Of a DNA stretch of 64,000 nucleotides, positions 3,815 to 63,545 are shown one piece after another. The DNA lies in NCBI RefSeq assembly GCF_006345805.1, contig NC_043013.1:15500001-15564000 (forward strand), read 5' to 3'. Position 1 is the stretch's first letter; each line of letters opens with the position of its first letter. Under the pieces are notes generated by a model. The model was not told the origin of the DNA, did no database searches, and was given only the letters and a program-made list of their open reading frames with translations. The stretch comes from Octopus sinensis (Eukaryota). A program made the position numbers and the translations under genes.

Positions 3815-3928
3815 TCACAGTTCGCCGCTCTTTTCTTCACTGGACTGGGTAGAAGCCGCCGCGTTCACCTCGTTCACAACATTCTCAAGGAAATCATCGC
3901 CAAAGCCTGTTGGAATATTCACCTCATT
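3815..3928 (-). CDS. Last coding exon NEVNIPTGFGDDFLENVVNEVNAAASTQSSEEKSGEL-stop
   Basis: tttttttaactcaccag acceptor, phase 0, ends in TGA followed by TAG. Confidence 0.85.
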   Translation of the reverse strand, partial: NEVNIPTGFGDDFLENVVNEVNAAASTQSSEEKSGEL

Positions 3929-4076
3929 CTGGTGAGTTAAAAAAAAAACAGAAAAGAATAGAATAATTAAAGATATATATCTGAAAGTATTGCTACGATT
4001 GATGTTGTCATAGGAAATACAGAACATTATTTCAGAATTTATTGTCTTATGTCGATACAAATCGAATACTTATATA

Positions 4077-5357
4077 CAAGAGGGTATCAAAAAGTTCCTG
4101 GACTAGGTTATGTTTGATAAGAAATAACTTATTTATCTACCATCCAAAGTACCTTGGATCGCAGAACGGCCTGCTGTGCTTATCTTAGATCGTAGGGCGA
4201 CTTGCTGTGCTTGAGAAGACCTATTGAGTCACGTACATCAACATCAAAATAAAAAATCAAATGGAAATTGTAGTTGTGATACCATTGCCGGTGGCACGTA
4301 AAAAGCACCATCTGAATGTGGCCGAGGCCAGCGCCGCCTTGACTGGCTTCTGTGCTGGTGGCACGTAAAAAAGCACCAAATGATCGTGGCCACTGCCAGT
4401 TTACCCTGGCACCTGTGCCGGCGGCACGTAAAAAGCACCCACTACATTCACGGAGTGGTTGGTGTTAGGAAGGGCATCCAGCTGTAGCAACACTGCCAGA
4501 TCAGACTGGAGCCTGGTGCAGCCTCCTGGCTTCCCAGACCCCGGTCGAACCGTCCAACCCATGCTAGCATGGAAAATAGACGTTAAACGATGATGATGAT
4601 GATGATGATGATGATTGAACATCATTCCTTTTGAAATAGTCACCTTGTGCAGCAATACACCGGTCCCAGTGTTCCTGACACTTTTGGAATCCGGCCCGAA
4701 AGTTGTTTTCCATACGCAAATCGAGGACCTTCTGCGATTCGTTCTTGATCTCGACAACGGTGTTAAAAGGACGATCTTGGGGAAGGTGCTAAAGCTGGCG
4801 AATAGGTCAGGGGTGGAAGCGATACCATGTTGCTTTTGACGAGAAACTCATGAGTGAAAAAAGCTCGGTGAAAAATCCAATTATCTGCGCTCCACAGATC
4901 CAGTCGCTTTTGCCAAATGTCCTCCTTTAAACACTTCAAAACGTTGCACTAGAACTTTCAATTGATAGCCTGGCCCTGGAGGACAAATTGTTGATGCACA
5001 ATACAACATTTCCAGGGCTGATGCTCGTGGCAGGTCTTCCAGATTACTCATTATCTCCCAGGGACTTTCTTCCGCTTTTGAAATGCCCTTGCCACTCAAA
5101 ATATTACGTACTACCCAGTGCCTAGTCACCGTAAACCTGCCCAACTGTATTCAATGTCTCTCAAGTTTAACGCAAAATTTCATGTTGTTTCACTGTTTCA
5201 ACTTCCTGTCCATGACAAAATCGCAAGACTATAACATACACAAATTTTACAATTTTTGAAGTAAACACTGCAATGTCAGTTGGCAGTCTGCCTCATGAAG
5301 GCTGCCATCTGTTGGCACGCTACAGAACTAGTCTAGGAACTTTTTAATACCACCTCA
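4077..5357 (-). mobile_element. Internally deleted mariner (Tc1/mariner) element with a nested SINE at about 4270-4610
   Basis: TA-flanked TIRs ...GGTATCAAAAAGTTCCTGGACTAG / CTAGTCTAGGAACTTTTTAATACC; decayed transposase IVHQQFV..GQ.IN, SADNWIFH, TYSPALAP, WDRCIAAQGDYF. Confidence 0.88.
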
Positions 5358-7037
5358 TATGTATGTATGTATGTATGTATGTATGTATGTATGTATGTAT
5401 GTATGTATGTATGTATGTATGTATGTATGCATGCATACATGCATGTATGTATGTACGTAGCTTTATACATACATACATACATACATACATACATACATAC
5501 ATACATACATACATACACACACACATACATACATACATTATATATATATAGACTTTATAGATTAACAAGGCAACCAATGGTTTCATGTAGAGAAATCTCG
5601 GCAATTCTTCATGCGATTCACTCAAGGAAGTTGGTATTTGTTTCCGCTTTCAATGAGAATATACAAGATTATGTGTGGCAATGTGGAACTTCAAAATACA
5701 TATATATATATATATATATAGATCAGGGCAGGTGACTTAAGGATTTCTTAATTGTTATCTCCCTTGCATTGGCACTGCATTTTTGCAAGAACTTGTGTTT
5801 ACCATAGATTAGTTAATTCTTTAATCATCTTTTCCGAAAGCGTTTATGCACACTCATATTTATAAATATATTTATATCTAGAGCATGCTTACTCTGAAAG
5901 AAGTATCACTCAACAGGTTACGTTGCTCAGAGATAAAAGTATCTCTCCTGGTTAAGCGCAGAGAAGCTACAGCTCTGGAACTATGGACATGTGATTAGAA
6001 TATCACAAGAAAGTCTCGCAAGAGGGTTTCTCCAAACCGAGCCAACCAGGAGATCTTTTGATAGTGCAAGAATGAAAGATGGTTGGATAATATCCGAGTG
6101 GCTGTGTGGTAAGTAGCTTGCTAACCAACCACATGGTTACGGGTTCAGTCCCACTGCGTGGCATCTTGGGCAAGTGTTTTCTGCTATAGCCCCGGGCCGA
6201 CCAATGCCTTGTGAGTGGATTTGGTAGACGGAAACTGAAAGAAGCCTGTCGTATATATGTGTATATATATATATGTATGTGTGTGTGTTTCTGTGTCTGT
6301 GTTTGAACCCCTAGCATTGCTAGACAACCGATGCTGGTGTGCTTACGTCCCCGTCACTTAGCGGTTCGGCAAAAAGAGACCGATAGAATAAGTACTGGGC
6401 TTACAAAGAATAAGTCCCGGGGTCGATTTGCTCGACTAAAGGCGGTGCTCCAGGCATGGCCGCAGTCAAATGACTGAAACAAGTAAAAGAGAGTAAAAGA
6501 GTAAATAGTTTAAGTTGGTCACACTTGGAATTCCAATCAGAAAGTGTAATGACGGTTACCCTGATAGAATCCTCTGGATGAAGAACTTGAGAACTTTAAC
6601 TCCACGATCCTCCTAGCAATAGTTGACAGAGAAGATGGATGGATGTAAAAATAATAATATTTTGACGTACCACCAGTTGGCTTTGAGGAATAGAAGACGG
6701 TGGCATAGACAGAGTGTGTACCGTCCAGAGGAGCCCTTGAGTTTGCTGCACCCAAAGTGAGACCCCAAACTTATACAGGATTTTACAGGTAGACTCCTAA
6801 ATATTGCCCTTTTAAAATCGTCGCCTGGGGCGGATTGCTTTCTCGCCCTTCCCTAAAAGAAGACCAATGATATTTTTATCCTCTTTTTGTTGTAAAGTTT
6901 TAATAAATGACAGATGTTTTGGTTTATATGGTCAAAACTATTGAATGCCAGAGAAAAGAAGAAGAAAAAACAGAAAGAAGAAGAGTATTGACTGCAGAAG
7001 ACAAGAAAATGTAAAAGGAATACGTAGATTCACTGAC

Positions 7038-7174
7038 CTCTTGAGTCTCATATTTGATTGGTCCAATGCGGAAATTAAATTGGCTTTTATTCAGAAGAAC
7101 CACACCAGCGGGTACCAGAGATATTAGTATAAGAACTCCAATGACTATACCAGCGATAGCGCCACCACTCAATC
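7038..7174 (-). CDS. Transmembrane exon GLSGGAIAGIVIGVLILISLVPAGVVLLNKSQFNFRIGPIKYETQE (1->0)
   Basis: LSGGAIAGIVIG is a typical type I TM start with about 23 hydrophobic residues; GAG|GTCAGT donor, 137 nt. Confidence 0.93.
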
Positions 7175-62839: not shown

Positions 62840-63040
62840 ATAATAATAATAACAACAACACTTTCTACTATAGGCACAAGGCCTGAAATTTTGGTGGGAA
62901 GGAACTTGTCGATTACATCTTAACGATTACATGTAACGAAAACAATTTCAACAACTACAAATGTGGTGCATCAGCATGGCCAGTACCCAAAGGTTAAAAG
63001 TAGCAAAATAAGGAAATGAAAACTATTTATAATTGCATAC

Positions 63041-63162
63041 CCTTCCCTTGTTTGTGTAGCAAACACCATTTTGGAGTTTCGCTCCATAACAGTCATACTT
63101 CTGACATGCGCAAGATTCCGGTTGGTAGTCGGCAGGACACTTCTGATTGGTAGTAGTTTTTT
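63041..63162 (-). CDS. Exon: Cys-rich module KTTTNQKCPADYQPESCACQKYDCYGAKLQNGVCYTNKGR (phase 1->0)
   Basis: Acceptor tttttttaactcttcaccag, donor AGG|GTATGC, 122 nt open. The CP-x5-SC-x-C-x4-C-x-GA-x6-C pattern continues into ASLTC in the next exon. Confidence 0.8.
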
Positions 63163-63499
63163 CTGGTGAAGAGTTAAAAAAAAAATAGAATAGAAATATA
63201 AAAATATATGAATCTCACAAGAATTGACTCTGCAGTTTTGTCTTGAAGTAAAGAATTACCTAAAACGATAATTATTTCTAATCTAAACACAAAAGCTAGT
63301 AAATTTAAGGGAAGGGTGATTATGTAATTTGAAGGAATCCAGTACTTAACTGGCCCTTTATATTGTCGAGCCCGAAAGAATGAAAGACAAAATTTGACGT
63401 CTGCAGGATTCGAACTCAGAACATAAAGAAACTGAGTATATCCCGTAAGGCATATTTTCCAACACTCTTACGATCCTGCTAAACACCTGTCGTACTTAC

Positions 63500-63545
63500 G
63501 TTGTAAAGTAATGGAATAATCTGATTTTGCGGCGGATACGTCCAC
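63500..63545 (-). CDS. Candidate 5'-most exon in window of the large membrane-protein gene (VDVSAAKSDYSITLQ, phase 0->1)
   Basis: Strong donor C|GTAAGT and an AG acceptor with a weak pyrimidine tract. Its phase 1 end fits the next exon (C+AA=Gln). The peptide resembles a signal-peptide end, but it is short. Confidence 0.4.

Follow-up and report, generated by a model that had tools for sequence, protein, structure and literature searches.

The balance of evidence tips somewhat towards reading the Octopus sinensis gene LOC115221051 as the ortholog of an unnamed type-I receptor family with a predicted ligand-binding cassette, most likely for glycan or matrix, and as a derived copy in octopus. 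By its domain order, the protein belongs to a putative GON-LamG3-Gly-WSC-EGF receptor family with members in molluscs and homoscleromorph sponges.

The gene lies on the minus strand, and the window –the whole stretch of 64,000 nucleotides that was analysed– carries its 3' ~60 kb. The sequence CM016875.1:15,500,001-15,564,000 equals the window with 0 mismatches. The data support one gene, uncharacterised as had been predicted: RefSeq titles XP_036366265.1 "uncharacterized protein LOC115221051 isoform X1", the orthologs are all titled 'uncharacterized' or 'hypothetical' (two pipelines give MEGF10/MEGF11), and a literature search on the locus tags found no paper mentioning them.

Gene structure

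With the best database match threaded on, 24 minus-strand exons (60689..3815) were spliced into a 1006-aa product identical to XP_036366265.1. The chain keeps a single frame with compatible phases and no stop until a TAA, whose last base is at 3815. The 24 in-phase exons of the original prediction thus stood; its length of 3030 nt did not, the coding length being 3021 nt for isoform X1 and 2994 nt for isoform X2. As an independent check, a splice-aware exon-chaining model, trained on the obvious coding pieces only, gave both boundaries exactly for 14 of the 24 exons and one boundary for 4 more. Ortholog matches at E of 1e-153 and lower exclude a chance origin of the chain. The exons are as follows, all on the minus strand (-).

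Upstream exon A, 63041..63162 (-): 122 nt, phase 1 to 0; first part of the Cys-rich domain (KCPADYQPESCACQKYDC...); not in the RefSeq model
Upstream exon B, 60715..60792 (-): 78 nt, phase 0 to 0; ASLTCRYGKFPTISVTEVHSKPNENF; strong acceptor ttttttttcag, donor GTAAGA
RefSeq 'exon 1', 60664..60689 (-): 26 nt, MLSCTYWSS; begins at an internal Met
Exon 2, 53182..53279 (-): 98 nt; last part of the Cys-rich domain (RSRPKRGNGKVSFYGNACRTYCAQCTAHATCL)
Exon 3, 49574..49726 (-): 153 nt; EGF-like domain (FFCDCKNGGTCD...CEEYDYC), weak Pfam hEGF/EGF_2 matches at residues 46-73
Exon 4, 47655..47779 (-): 125 nt; FN2-like half-motif (CQLPFTFKGQTYSRC), then LamG3
Exon 5, 45263..45397 (-): 135 nt; start of Laminin_G_3 (PF13385)
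Exon 6, 44501..44725 (-): 225 nt; Laminin_G_3
Exon 7, 42898..42987 (-): 90 nt; Laminin_G_3
Exon 8, 41367..41447 (-): 81 nt; end of Laminin_G_3
Exon 9, 38992..39115 (-): 124 nt; start of the Gly-rich module (GLVAHYELG..C..DH..DW)
Exon 10, 37097..37200 (-): 104 nt; Gly-rich module, first long beta strands (HCNIKRF...)
Exon 11, 35175..35280 (-): 106 nt; Gly-rich module
Exon 12, 32828..32945 (-): 118 nt; Gly-rich module (GGGGGG...PGGGG)
Exon 13, 31682..31830 (-): 149 nt; Gly-rich module (LYMGSGGGSGG)
Exon 14, 29796..29913 (-): 118 nt; Gly-rich module (GGDGGSGGGAISL...)
Exon 15, 28277..28419 (-): 143 nt; Gly-rich module, Cys-rich loop and SGPGGGGSGGSIHISGTYVDIG
Exon 16, 23136..23302 (-): 167 nt; end of the Gly-rich module
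Exon 17, 22460..22623 (-): 164 nt; linker, then start of WSC (PF01822)
Exon 18, 21275..21364 (-): 90 nt; WSC
Exon 19, 18831..18993 (-): 163 nt; end of WSC and conserved linker C..WC..PKWG
Exon 20, 17196..17291 (-): 96 nt; first EGF-like unit of the stalk, truncated (CQCPAGKYGIGCDK)
Exon 21, 13005..13146 (-): 142 nt; MEGF/laminin-type EGF unit, aligning with several P0006 EGF units
Exon 22, 9800..9952 (-): 153 nt in X1; second MEGF/laminin-type EGF unit
Exon 23, 7038..7174 (-): 137 nt; transmembrane helix (AIAGIVIGVLILISLVPAGVVLL) and juxtamembrane FNF..KYETQ motif
Exon 24, 3815..3928 (-): 114 nt including the TAA stop; acidic C-terminal tail with GFGDDFLEN

The window holds at least 25 coding exons, and the gene runs upstream past position 64000. 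Of the two or three further upstream exons that had been proposed, two are supported (63162-63041 and 60792-60715), and nothing supports an exon near 63545. Exon A matches residues 346-382 of the Lottia protein (P0002) and the O. vulgaris ortholog model (P0005), has AG/GT sites and was chosen by the exon-chaining model; exon B is present in P0005, and its TCRY motif aligns with Lottia and with the homolog P0006. The idea that the gene is contained in 60 kb had to be given up: at 3-5 kb beyond position 64000 lie one EGF exon and one Cys-rich exon, and the GON and WSC1 exons are farther out. The reading frame is open for more than 1300 codons, over at least 28 exons and more than 70 kb. That its exons form one transcript unit, as predicted, is borne out by the single 1353-aa protein of the O. 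vulgaris model, which covers all domains, and by intron-free contigs of ~5.3 kb encoding P0006 (1591 aa), which also spans them all.

At the 5' end, frames A and B conflict over 60792-60664, with a TAA in frame B and an apparent frameshift in the 5' exon. RefSeq 'exon 1' is probably not a true start; exon B ancestrally continued further, and this piece is what is left of that continuation in the +1 frame (..DGPTGSTMLSCTYWSS); its frame aligns to Lottia PVGTEIVGCNYWDS, with a TAA directly upstream. The RefSeq N-terminus lacks a signal peptide because the 5' end of the model is wrong. No octopus signal-peptide exon was found, and the RefSeq and O. vulgaris models both begin within the ectodomain. 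The O. vulgaris model also uses a weak alternative acceptor for exon 2 (53263).

Two donors of X1 are non-canonical, GA at 28276 (exon 15) and GG at 9799 (exon 22). A canonical GT lies 18 nt upstream of the former (exon end 28295, used by the O. vulgaris model) and another 27 nt upstream of the latter (exon end 9827, used by isoform X2 and O. vulgaris). Given the frameshift and these two donors, the octopus exon structure is a provisional mRNA model.

The same irregularities –the frame conflict with its TAA, the signal-peptide exon missing from both models, the GA and GG donors– together with real reductions of stalk and tail might point to a decaying gene or a pseudogene. We consider this quite improbable, since the long reading frame is open across all its exons, canonical alternative donors exist, and octopus retains every conserved Cys and Gly position of LamG3, the Gly module and WSC. 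Moreover, the ectodomain modules are all similarly close to P0006 (each 40-57% identical), and in the splice form of O. vulgaris the lost loop takes out a Cys pair cleanly.

Domain order and family

Two of the predicted module types are above their Pfam cut-offs in the window: Laminin_G_3 (PF13385, residues 146-299, E=1.2e-19, 71.4 bits against 27.6, full profile 1-151) and WSC (PF01822, residues 676-755, E=1.9e-17, 63.7 bits against 27.8). No second WSC lies in the window. Pfam EGF matches are weak; one transmembrane segment and a 56-aa tail are present, in agreement with the predicted single-pass receptor with a short non-catalytic tail. Some orthologs carry precomputed PF07953 flags; these would be an overlapping related-fold match on the LamG3 stretch and no evidence for a toxin.

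The predicted FN2 domain did not hold. A complete FN2 domain has ~42 residues, four Cys and a conserved Trp. The fn2 profile had no match at E<=1 in the octopus protein, in Lottia only positions 1-29 of the 42-position profile are matched (23.3 bits, cut-off 22.2), and the FN2-like stretch passes directly into LamG3 after its second Cys. We rejected a complete domain in LOC115221051 and describe a half-motif only.

Across the family, the ectodomain modules keep a fixed order: a signal peptide, a GON domain (in molluscs with a WSC inserted inside it), an EGF, a domain with 10-12 Cys and another EGF. Next come an FN2-like hairpin joined to the ConA-like Laminin_G_3, a Gly-rich domain of ~350 aa and a WSC, followed by a variable stalk of PEAR1/MEGF/laminin-type EGFs, one transmembrane helix and a tail of 40-90 aa. 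The signal peptide is present in P0006 and in the Lottia, oyster and sponge proteins. GON is N-terminal in the proteins of O. vulgaris, Lottia, oyster and sponges (E between 1e-24 and 1e-36; 4.6e-30 in the O. vulgaris model, which also has the second WSC).

The same domain order was found in Lottia, Haliotis, Patella, Crassostrea, Ruditapes, Mya and others (E from 1e-130 to 1e-209), in the homoscleromorph sponges Oscarella and Corticium, and in a sponge-like EukProt transcript. Full-length collinear matches were obtained in Lottia, Sinanodonta and C. virginica, for example query 2-884 in one stretch. The family had been taken as lophotrochozoan, which the full-length orthologs of Oscarella and Corticium contradict.

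The octopus stalk has ~3 EGF units, against ~8-25 in orthologs, where EGF_laminin and EGF_PEAR1L profiles match. No hidden EGF exons were found in the octopus introns.

Comparison with known receptors

As predicted, our searches found no characterised family with the full architecture. MEGF10, MEGF11, PEAR1, Draper and CED-1 are alike in their type-I single-pass topology, PEAR1L/laminin-type stalk (in the orthologs), short non-catalytic tail and NPxY (in most members). The stalk EGFs of orthologs are of PEAR1/MEGF and laminin type, so the earlier comparison with MEGF10, Draper and SCARF is apt for the stalk.

That group is recognised by an N-terminal EMI domain, ~15-17 atypical or laminin-type EGF repeats and cytoplasmic NPxY and YxxL motifs. 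A Pfam search for EMI was negative for all the proteins scanned (octopus, O. vulgaris, P0006, oyster and sponge), and a cassette of ~1100 aa (GON/WSC/EGF/Cys-rich/LamG3/Gly-rich/WSC) stands in its place. The automatically assigned annotation names in O. vulgaris and Mactra imply an octopus ortholog of MEGF10/MEGF11 (Draper/CED-1), and the PEAR1L/laminin-type repeats and NPxY tails of orthologs fit them. However, the N-terminal ~1100 residues have no counterpart in that group, and octopus has just ~3 EGF units and neither NPxY nor YxxL. Domain content already contradicts such orthology, which we regard as hardly credible.

SCARF1/SCARF2 (SREC) share EGF repeats near the membrane, a single transmembrane helix and a proposed clearance role. 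Their ectodomains contain nothing but EGF repeats, and a long Ser/Pro-rich tail follows, whereas EGFs are a minor share of the octopus protein and its tail has 56 aa. Kremen1/2, polycystin-1 and the fungal Wsc sensors have a bona fide WSC in common with this family, to which molluscs add a second one upstream; the octopus family lacks the kringle/CUB, PKD/REJ and fungal Ser/Thr-rich stalk of those proteins, and fungal multi-WSC proteins match through the WSC domain only.

To our knowledge, ADAMTS9, ADAMTS20 and GON-1 are the only well-known GON-domain proteins. They share GON with the receptor family described here (O. vulgaris, Lottia, oyster, sponges); by contrast, the latter has no metalloprotease, disintegrin or thrombospondin repeat, and its GON is N-terminal on a membrane receptor and split by a WSC in molluscs.

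Tail motifs and possible roles

Family tails carry a conserved VK[FY] motif and one or more GFxNPxY motifs, such as GFSNPHY in oysters, GFSNPIY and ANPIY in sponges, and NFENPFY in P0006. NPxY is present in oysters, caenogastropods, P0006 and sponges, and is replaced by NPxH, NPxF or NPxT in several bivalves and gastropods. The octopus tail is acidic, with GFGDDFLEN at this place and no kinase, NPxY or YxxL, and its identity to P0006 is 26%.

Oscarella also has paralogs (P0179-P0181) with GON, LamG3, the Gly module (E~1e-57 to 1e-60), WSC, a transmembrane helix and a tyrosine kinase (PK_Tyr, E=3e-85), whose kinase domains are nearest to PDGFR, FGFR and RET, not ALK. Database searches found no kinase-bearing paralog in molluscs. 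Since this ectodomain is joined to a tyrosine kinase there, the cassette is probably a ligand sensor.

These domains can plausibly be read as those of a receptor for glycan or matrix. Outside the cell the cassette would bind a ligand, most likely a glycan or matrix polymer, to judge by its WSC and ConA-like parts and by the activities of such domains in other proteins. In most members NPxY could recruit PTB-domain adaptors and lead to endocytosis or phagocytosis, as in LDLR, MEGF10, Draper and CED-1. The octopus copy is derived, with its short stalk, GFGDDFLEN in place of NPxY and one Cys loop lost through an apparently frameshifted exon; it probably still binds the ligand, and would signal or traffic through other tail motifs or partner proteins. 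The proposed role in pattern recognition, adhesion or clearance is a possible one; octopus has lost NPxY, the ancestral tail motif that would best support clearance. The missing octopus NPxY counts against an endocytic reading, as do NPxH, NPxF and NPxT in other molluscs.

The protein might instead serve mainly in adhesion or matrix organisation, its lectin-like ectodomain tethering cells to polysaccharide, matrix or other cells with no endocytic or signalling output, and the octopus tail being mostly an anchor. GON, LamG, EGF and WSC are typical of matrix-associated proteins and fit such a role, and so do the loss of NPxY in octopus, the low tail identity next to that of the ectodomain, and the many orthologs with NPxH or NPxF. 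Still, we hold it possible but doubtful: sponges and molluscs alike keep the GFxNP core and VK[FY], a sign that the tail has a function, and the coupling to a kinase in Oscarella fits ligand sensing better than passive adhesion.

A further alternative is a ligand-binding co-receptor that signals via a partner kinase or membrane protein, as the kinase-less counterpart of the sponge paralogs. The PDGFR/FGFR/RET-like fusions of Oscarella and the short, acidic, non-catalytic octopus tail agree with this, but the searches returned no mollusc kinase paralog and no dimerisation motif was identified, and we rate it as rather unlikely. The ligand-binding family reading remains our preferred one.

The Gly-rich module

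The original prediction did not include the ~350-aa Gly-rich module. Encoded by exons 9-16, it is beta-rich, makes up about one third of the protein and is its largest module. It is also the best-conserved part (54% identity between octopus and P0006), with 42 invariant columns over sponge and mollusc sequences, and is found in all family members (E from 1e-56 to 1e-102); the TYVDIG of exon 15 is kept in orthologs.

A long extracellular Gly-rich region beside beta-sandwich and EGF-like modules is also seen in ALK/LTK, and the sponge paralogs are receptor tyrosine kinases too. The module gave no match to the ALK/LTK Gly_rich domain (PF12810) or any other Pfam profile, none in PDB by sequence or profile, and none to ALK/LTK in Foldseek with either model. 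ALK/LTK membership was rejected on the missing PF12810 match, the kinase-free octopus tail and the PDGFR/FGFR/RET-like sponge kinases.

The AF2 model of the module is confident (pLDDT 81.6, pTM 0.83). Searches of IMG/VR and PHROGs found no sequence-level relatives, and the significant fold matches are solely to BFVD predicted structures of prasinovirus, giant-virus and phage proteins. The top match is a Bathycoccus virus PA14-domain protein (E=1.6e-13, TMq 0.56, 24% identity), followed by an Ostreococcus virus protein (E=6e-13) and Pandoravirus, Orpheovirus and phage proteins.

Tentatively, and with less than even confidence, we suggest that the module is an undescribed extracellular domain family whose fold has its only counterparts among predicted surface proteins of viruses: those of marine algae, giant viruses and phages. 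It could be the ligand-binding core of a receptor family that predates the sponge-bilaterian split and was wired to NPxY tails or tyrosine kinases. Most animal lineages would later have lost this family, while molluscs and homoscleromorph sponges retained it. The viral and phage Gly-rich surface proteins, known from predicted structures alone, resemble it in predicted fold and sit in entirely different protein contexts.

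Gene model

We showed that LOC115221051 is a single large gene on the minus strand. Its product is a type-I membrane protein in which a conserved lectin-like cassette is followed by a short EGF stalk and a short non-catalytic tail, and we consider its identity and this architecture very probable as described here. The existence of the gene is not new, because RefSeq already lists this uncharacterised locus. What is new is its corrected extent, the definition of a family with a sponge-mollusc distribution, the alternative NPxY-tail and kinase forms of that family, and an undescribed Gly-rich domain.

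The window corresponds to CM016875.1:15,500,001-15,564,000, on an Octopus sinensis chromosome (assembly GCA_006345805.1), and its reverse complement matched L001, the same locus in gene orientation and extending upstream of window position 64000, with 0 mismatches over 64,000 bases. It is AT-rich (32-41% GC) and microsatellites are abundant, which marks it as eukaryotic DNA. Stop-free stretches on the minus strand contained clear EGF, FN2-like, ConA/LamG-like, WSC, transmembrane and Gly-rich coding pieces. For exon prediction, we applied a splice-aware chaining model that tracked phase, scored codons by log-odds trained on 14 obvious pieces, and scored splice sites with generic donor and acceptor matrices. 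With a low penalty it over-predicted (56 exons, including microsatellite 'exons'), and this run was superseded by a stricter one, which gave a 20-exon chain in phase, and then by protein-guided threading.

The draft protein was 97% identical to XP_036366265.1 (1006 aa, Octopus sinensis), whose RefSeq title is "uncharacterized protein LOC115221051 isoform X1". Threading XP_036366265.1 on the window placed it in exactly 24 exons (the first at 60689-60664, the last at 3928-3815) that sum to 3021 nt with the stop codon, have consistent phases throughout and give a translation identical to the RefSeq protein. The chaining model had placed both boundaries exactly in 14 of these exons and one boundary in 4 more. 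The 24 exons that the original prediction joined in one frame are therefore real and its stop at 3815 is correct; its length of 3030 nt was 9 nt too high. Overall, that prediction was essentially right as an observation, with details corrected here, and its interpretation is partly supported.

Isoform X1 uses non-canonical donors at two minus-strand sites, GA at 28276 and GG at 9799, and canonical GT donors lie in the same frame 18 nt (28294) and 27 nt (9826) upstream. The GA donor retains TYVDIG, a six-residue stretch that every ortholog conserves; the O. vulgaris model uses the canonical GT at this exon 15 site. At exon 22, the canonical GT serves as donor in isoform X2 (997 aa) as well as in the O. 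vulgaris model. A (CA)n microsatellite begins immediately 3' of exon 15, and a (GT)n-type run adjoins the exon 20 donor at 17195.

Correction of the 5' end

The RefSeq model is 5'-truncated and its 5' end is wrong. Its N-terminus (MLSCTYWSSRSRPK...) has no signal peptide. Both an O. vulgaris model (CAI9735421.1, 1353 aa, auto-named "MEGF11") and a Lottia homolog have additional N-terminal sequence comprising GON, WSC, EGF and Cys-rich domains. Two to three upstream exons had been proposed, with an upper bound at 63545. Two were found inside the window, and none was supported near that bound:

Upstream exons in the window
63162-63041, minus strand: exon A, encoding KCPADYQPESCACQKYDC...
60792-60715, minus strand: exon B, encoding ASLTCRYGKFPTISVTEVHSKPNENF; strong acceptor, GTAAGA donor

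Next upstream come two exons for a Cys-rich piece and an EGF, at L001 1419-1544 and 3453-3557, which places them 3-5 kb past window position 64000. The GON and first WSC exons are farther upstream, outside the window.

The annotated start lies in the region 60664-60792. We analysed its two frames separately, without reading through the frameshift. Frame A (minus strand) encodes ..TCRYGKFP..NENF, and the +1 frame holds a remnant, ..DGPTGSTMLSCTYWSS, homologous to Lottia YCPVGTEIVGCNYWDS, a loop kept in Lottia and in P0006, a 1591-aa homolog. RefSeq "exon 1" (60689-60664) corresponds to the tail of exon B read in the +1 frame, with a good donor and the phase required by the strong exon 2 acceptor at 53279. 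Upstream of it, the +1 frame contains a TAA, and a Gly stands in place of the first loop Cys. On the simplest reading, a 1-nt frameshift has apparently arisen in an ancestral exon, 128 or 131 nt long, that belonged to the Cys-rich domain. The annotations handled it differently: RefSeq starts at an internal Met, and the O. vulgaris model splices from GTAAGA to a weak acceptor at 53263.

Domain architecture

Pfam identified Laminin_G_3 at residues 146-299 (E=1.2e-19) and one WSC domain at residues 676-755 (E=1.9e-17); EGF matches were weak. The CQLPFTFKGQTYSRC motif is an FN2-like hairpin fused to LamG3 and not a full FN2 domain, because Pfam did not detect FN2 in the octopus protein and the Lottia match, barely over threshold, covered no more than positions 1-29 of the 42-position profile. 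A true FN2 domain was thus ruled out. Of the MEGF/laminin-type EGF units in the stalk, one is truncated and two are complete; next come a 23-residue transmembrane helix and a 56-aa acidic tail. The largest element, which had been missed from the sequence alone, is a Gly-rich region at residues ~318-664 (exons 9-16).

The Gly-rich module

This module had no Pfam match at E<=1 and no PDB match by sequence or profile. It also occurs in a 444-aa metagenomic protein from an ENA contig, P0076, which contains a WSC, a PT-rich (Pro-rich) linker and the Gly module, with the other cassette parts absent; the module thus behaves as an autonomous domain. Aligning 23 mollusc, sponge and metagenomic sequences gave 42 invariant columns, mainly Gly, plus D-W, H-C, F and conserved Cys. 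AlphaFold2 produced a mediocre model from 16 sequences (pLDDT 66) and a confident one from 23 (pLDDT 81.6, pTM 0.83), the latter with several 11-13-residue beta strands and ordered Gly-rich segments between them.

Foldseek against the PDB gave nothing significant for either model, the best matches being beta-helix proteins at E>=3. Against BFVD (predicted viral structures), 11 matches were obtained at E<=0.001, including the following:

Structural matches of the Gly-rich module in BFVD
Bathycoccus virus "PA14 domain-containing protein": E=1.6e-13, TMq 0.56, 24% identity over 292 columns
Ostreococcus virus protein: E=6e-13
Pandoravirus and Orpheovirus "collagen-like" proteins
Uncultured phage proteins

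Sequence searches of IMG/VR viral contigs and of PHROGs found no relatives. Given the lack of Pfam, PDB, IMG/VR and PHROGs matches together with the BFVD fold matches, the Gly module is, as modelled, an undescribed domain whose detectable structural relatives are only uncharacterised viral proteins. P0076 and the prasinovirus fold matches hint that it also occurs in marine protists or their viruses.

The glycine-rich domain of ALK/LTK was considered and ruled out: the octopus module matched neither Pfam Gly_rich nor any PDB entry by sequence or profile, Foldseek gave no such match for either model, and the kinases of the sponge paralogs are PDGFR/FGFR/RET-like.

Family membership and distribution

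Homolog searches were made on Gly-poor regions because Gly-rich and EGF words saturated the initial search, and were complemented by running phmmer exhaustively on 1.84 billion representative proteins. Together they retrieved collinear orthologs in gastropods (Lottia, Haliotis, Patella, Pomacea, Batillaria) and bivalves (Crassostrea, Saccostrea, Ostrea, Ruditapes, Mya, Mactra, Pinctada, Dreissena, unionids and scallops). P0006, 45% identical to the octopus protein, is encoded by intron-free contigs of ~5.3 kb and probably represents the transcript of another cephalopod. Homoscleromorph sponges have full-length orthologs as well: Oscarella lobularis XP_065844803.1 (2497 aa), Corticium candelabrum and a EukProt transcript. 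For sponge and oyster proteins, Pfam scans of the N-terminal half confirmed the order GON, EGF, LamG3, WSC; in molluscs, the first WSC sits as an insertion inside the GON domain.

Among the best 150 of 3995 matches (E<=0.001), the remainder were generic multi-WSC, LamG or MEGF proteins, each matching through one domain. Within the limits of these searches, the receptor family appears restricted to Mollusca and Porifera. The description of the octopus protein as an uncharacterised receptor holds, since the RefSeq title and every named family member read "uncharacterized" or "hypothetical", and literature searches on the locus tags and on the GON+WSC combination found nothing. A plain MEGF10/11 is the rival suggested by names given to relatives in other annotations; domain content contradicts orthology and rules it out, and those names are misleading.

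Cytoplasmic tails and proposed function

All family tails carry VK[FY] ~20 residues past the transmembrane helix, plus GFxNPx[YHF]. The latter reads GFSNPHY in oysters, GSENPMY or GTDNPMY in caenogastropods, NFENPFY in P0006, and GFSNPIY plus ANPIY in sponges. The octopus tail has GFGDDFLEN at the corresponding position, so NPxY has been lost.

The stalk also varies, with ~25 EGF units (EGF_laminin, EGF_PEAR1L) in bivalves, gastropods and sponges, ~8 in P0006 and ~3 in octopus. With the P0006 stalk as query, tblastn detected no further EGF exons within introns of the octopus gene, which ruled out hidden exons lengthening the stalk. In the Oscarella ortholog P0175, the EGF stalk has a ~130-aa non-EGF insert (~residues 1290-1420; ..AEDGKLGNQKSG..DYYVWLRVVAPDGRSDSVYVSYNN..), which resembles a beta-sandwich of carbohydrate-binding-module type and has no Pfam match.

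Three Oscarella lobularis paralogs (P0179-P0181, 1671-1868 aa) combine the same ectodomain (GON, EGF, LamG3, Gly module and WSC, plus an SRCR in one of the three) with a transmembrane helix and a tyrosine-kinase domain (PF07714, E~3e-85). These kinases are closest to PDGFR, FGFR, RET and VEGFR, and a kinase insert is present. One cassette on two cytoplasmic outputs, NPxY tail and kinase, is the best available evidence for a ligand-sensing unit. From this reuse on receptor tyrosine kinases, and from the roles of WSC and ConA-like domains in other proteins, we infer that the lectin-like cassette would bind a glycan or matrix ligand outside the cell.

For most of the family, uptake would depend on PTB-domain adaptors recruited by NPxY, on the model of LDLR, MEGF10, Draper and CED-1. 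An endocytic or clearance mechanism is a tentative proposal for the family, somewhat on the improbable side, and less likely still in octopus itself. Since NPxY is lost there, the octopus receptor would need the conserved juxtamembrane motif or partner proteins in its place. Alternatively, the octopus protein may be mainly adhesive or, less probably, may serve as a co-receptor or be the product of a decaying gene. Its identity to P0006 is even along the ectodomain (40-57% per domain, 54% in the Gly module) and only 26% in the transmembrane helix and tail.

If these readings are true, an animal surface-receptor family has escaped description, in which a fixed lectin-like cassette of ~1100 residues is conserved between sponges and molluscs and has either an NPxY tail or, in sponges, a tyrosine kinase attached. 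The Gly-rich module would be a new extracellular domain for domain databases, and the family a test case for modular receptor assembly in early animals and a candidate glycan or matrix sensor in mollusc immunity or tissue biology.

Repeats and other elements in the window

No tRNA (ARAGORN) or Rfam match was found anywhere in the 64,000 nt. Several repeats were observed:

Repeats in the window
53626-54536 and 55423-56313, plus strand: two tandem Penelope-like or GIY-YIG-type retroelement fragments, in the 7.4-kb intron upstream of exon 2
60969-62926, minus strand: LINE-like ORFs in the intron between exons A and B, oriented as the gene
2710-3116, 6096-6509, 13541-14060, 24818-25002, 28978-29343, 57704-58023, 59249-59629 and smaller pieces, both orientations among copies: SINE-like repeat

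The two retroelement copies have near-identical ORF pieces, and the second contains a GIY-YIG nuclease domain (Pfam E=2.4e-6). Among the LINE-like ORFs, one piece resembles an AP endonuclease (..LVLVGDWNHILD..) and another, containing a CX2C knuckle, is gag-like; Pfam gave no match at E<=0.01. The SINE-like interspersed repeat is ~410 bp long and has at least 8 sizeable copies with 78-96% identity, all in introns or flanks.
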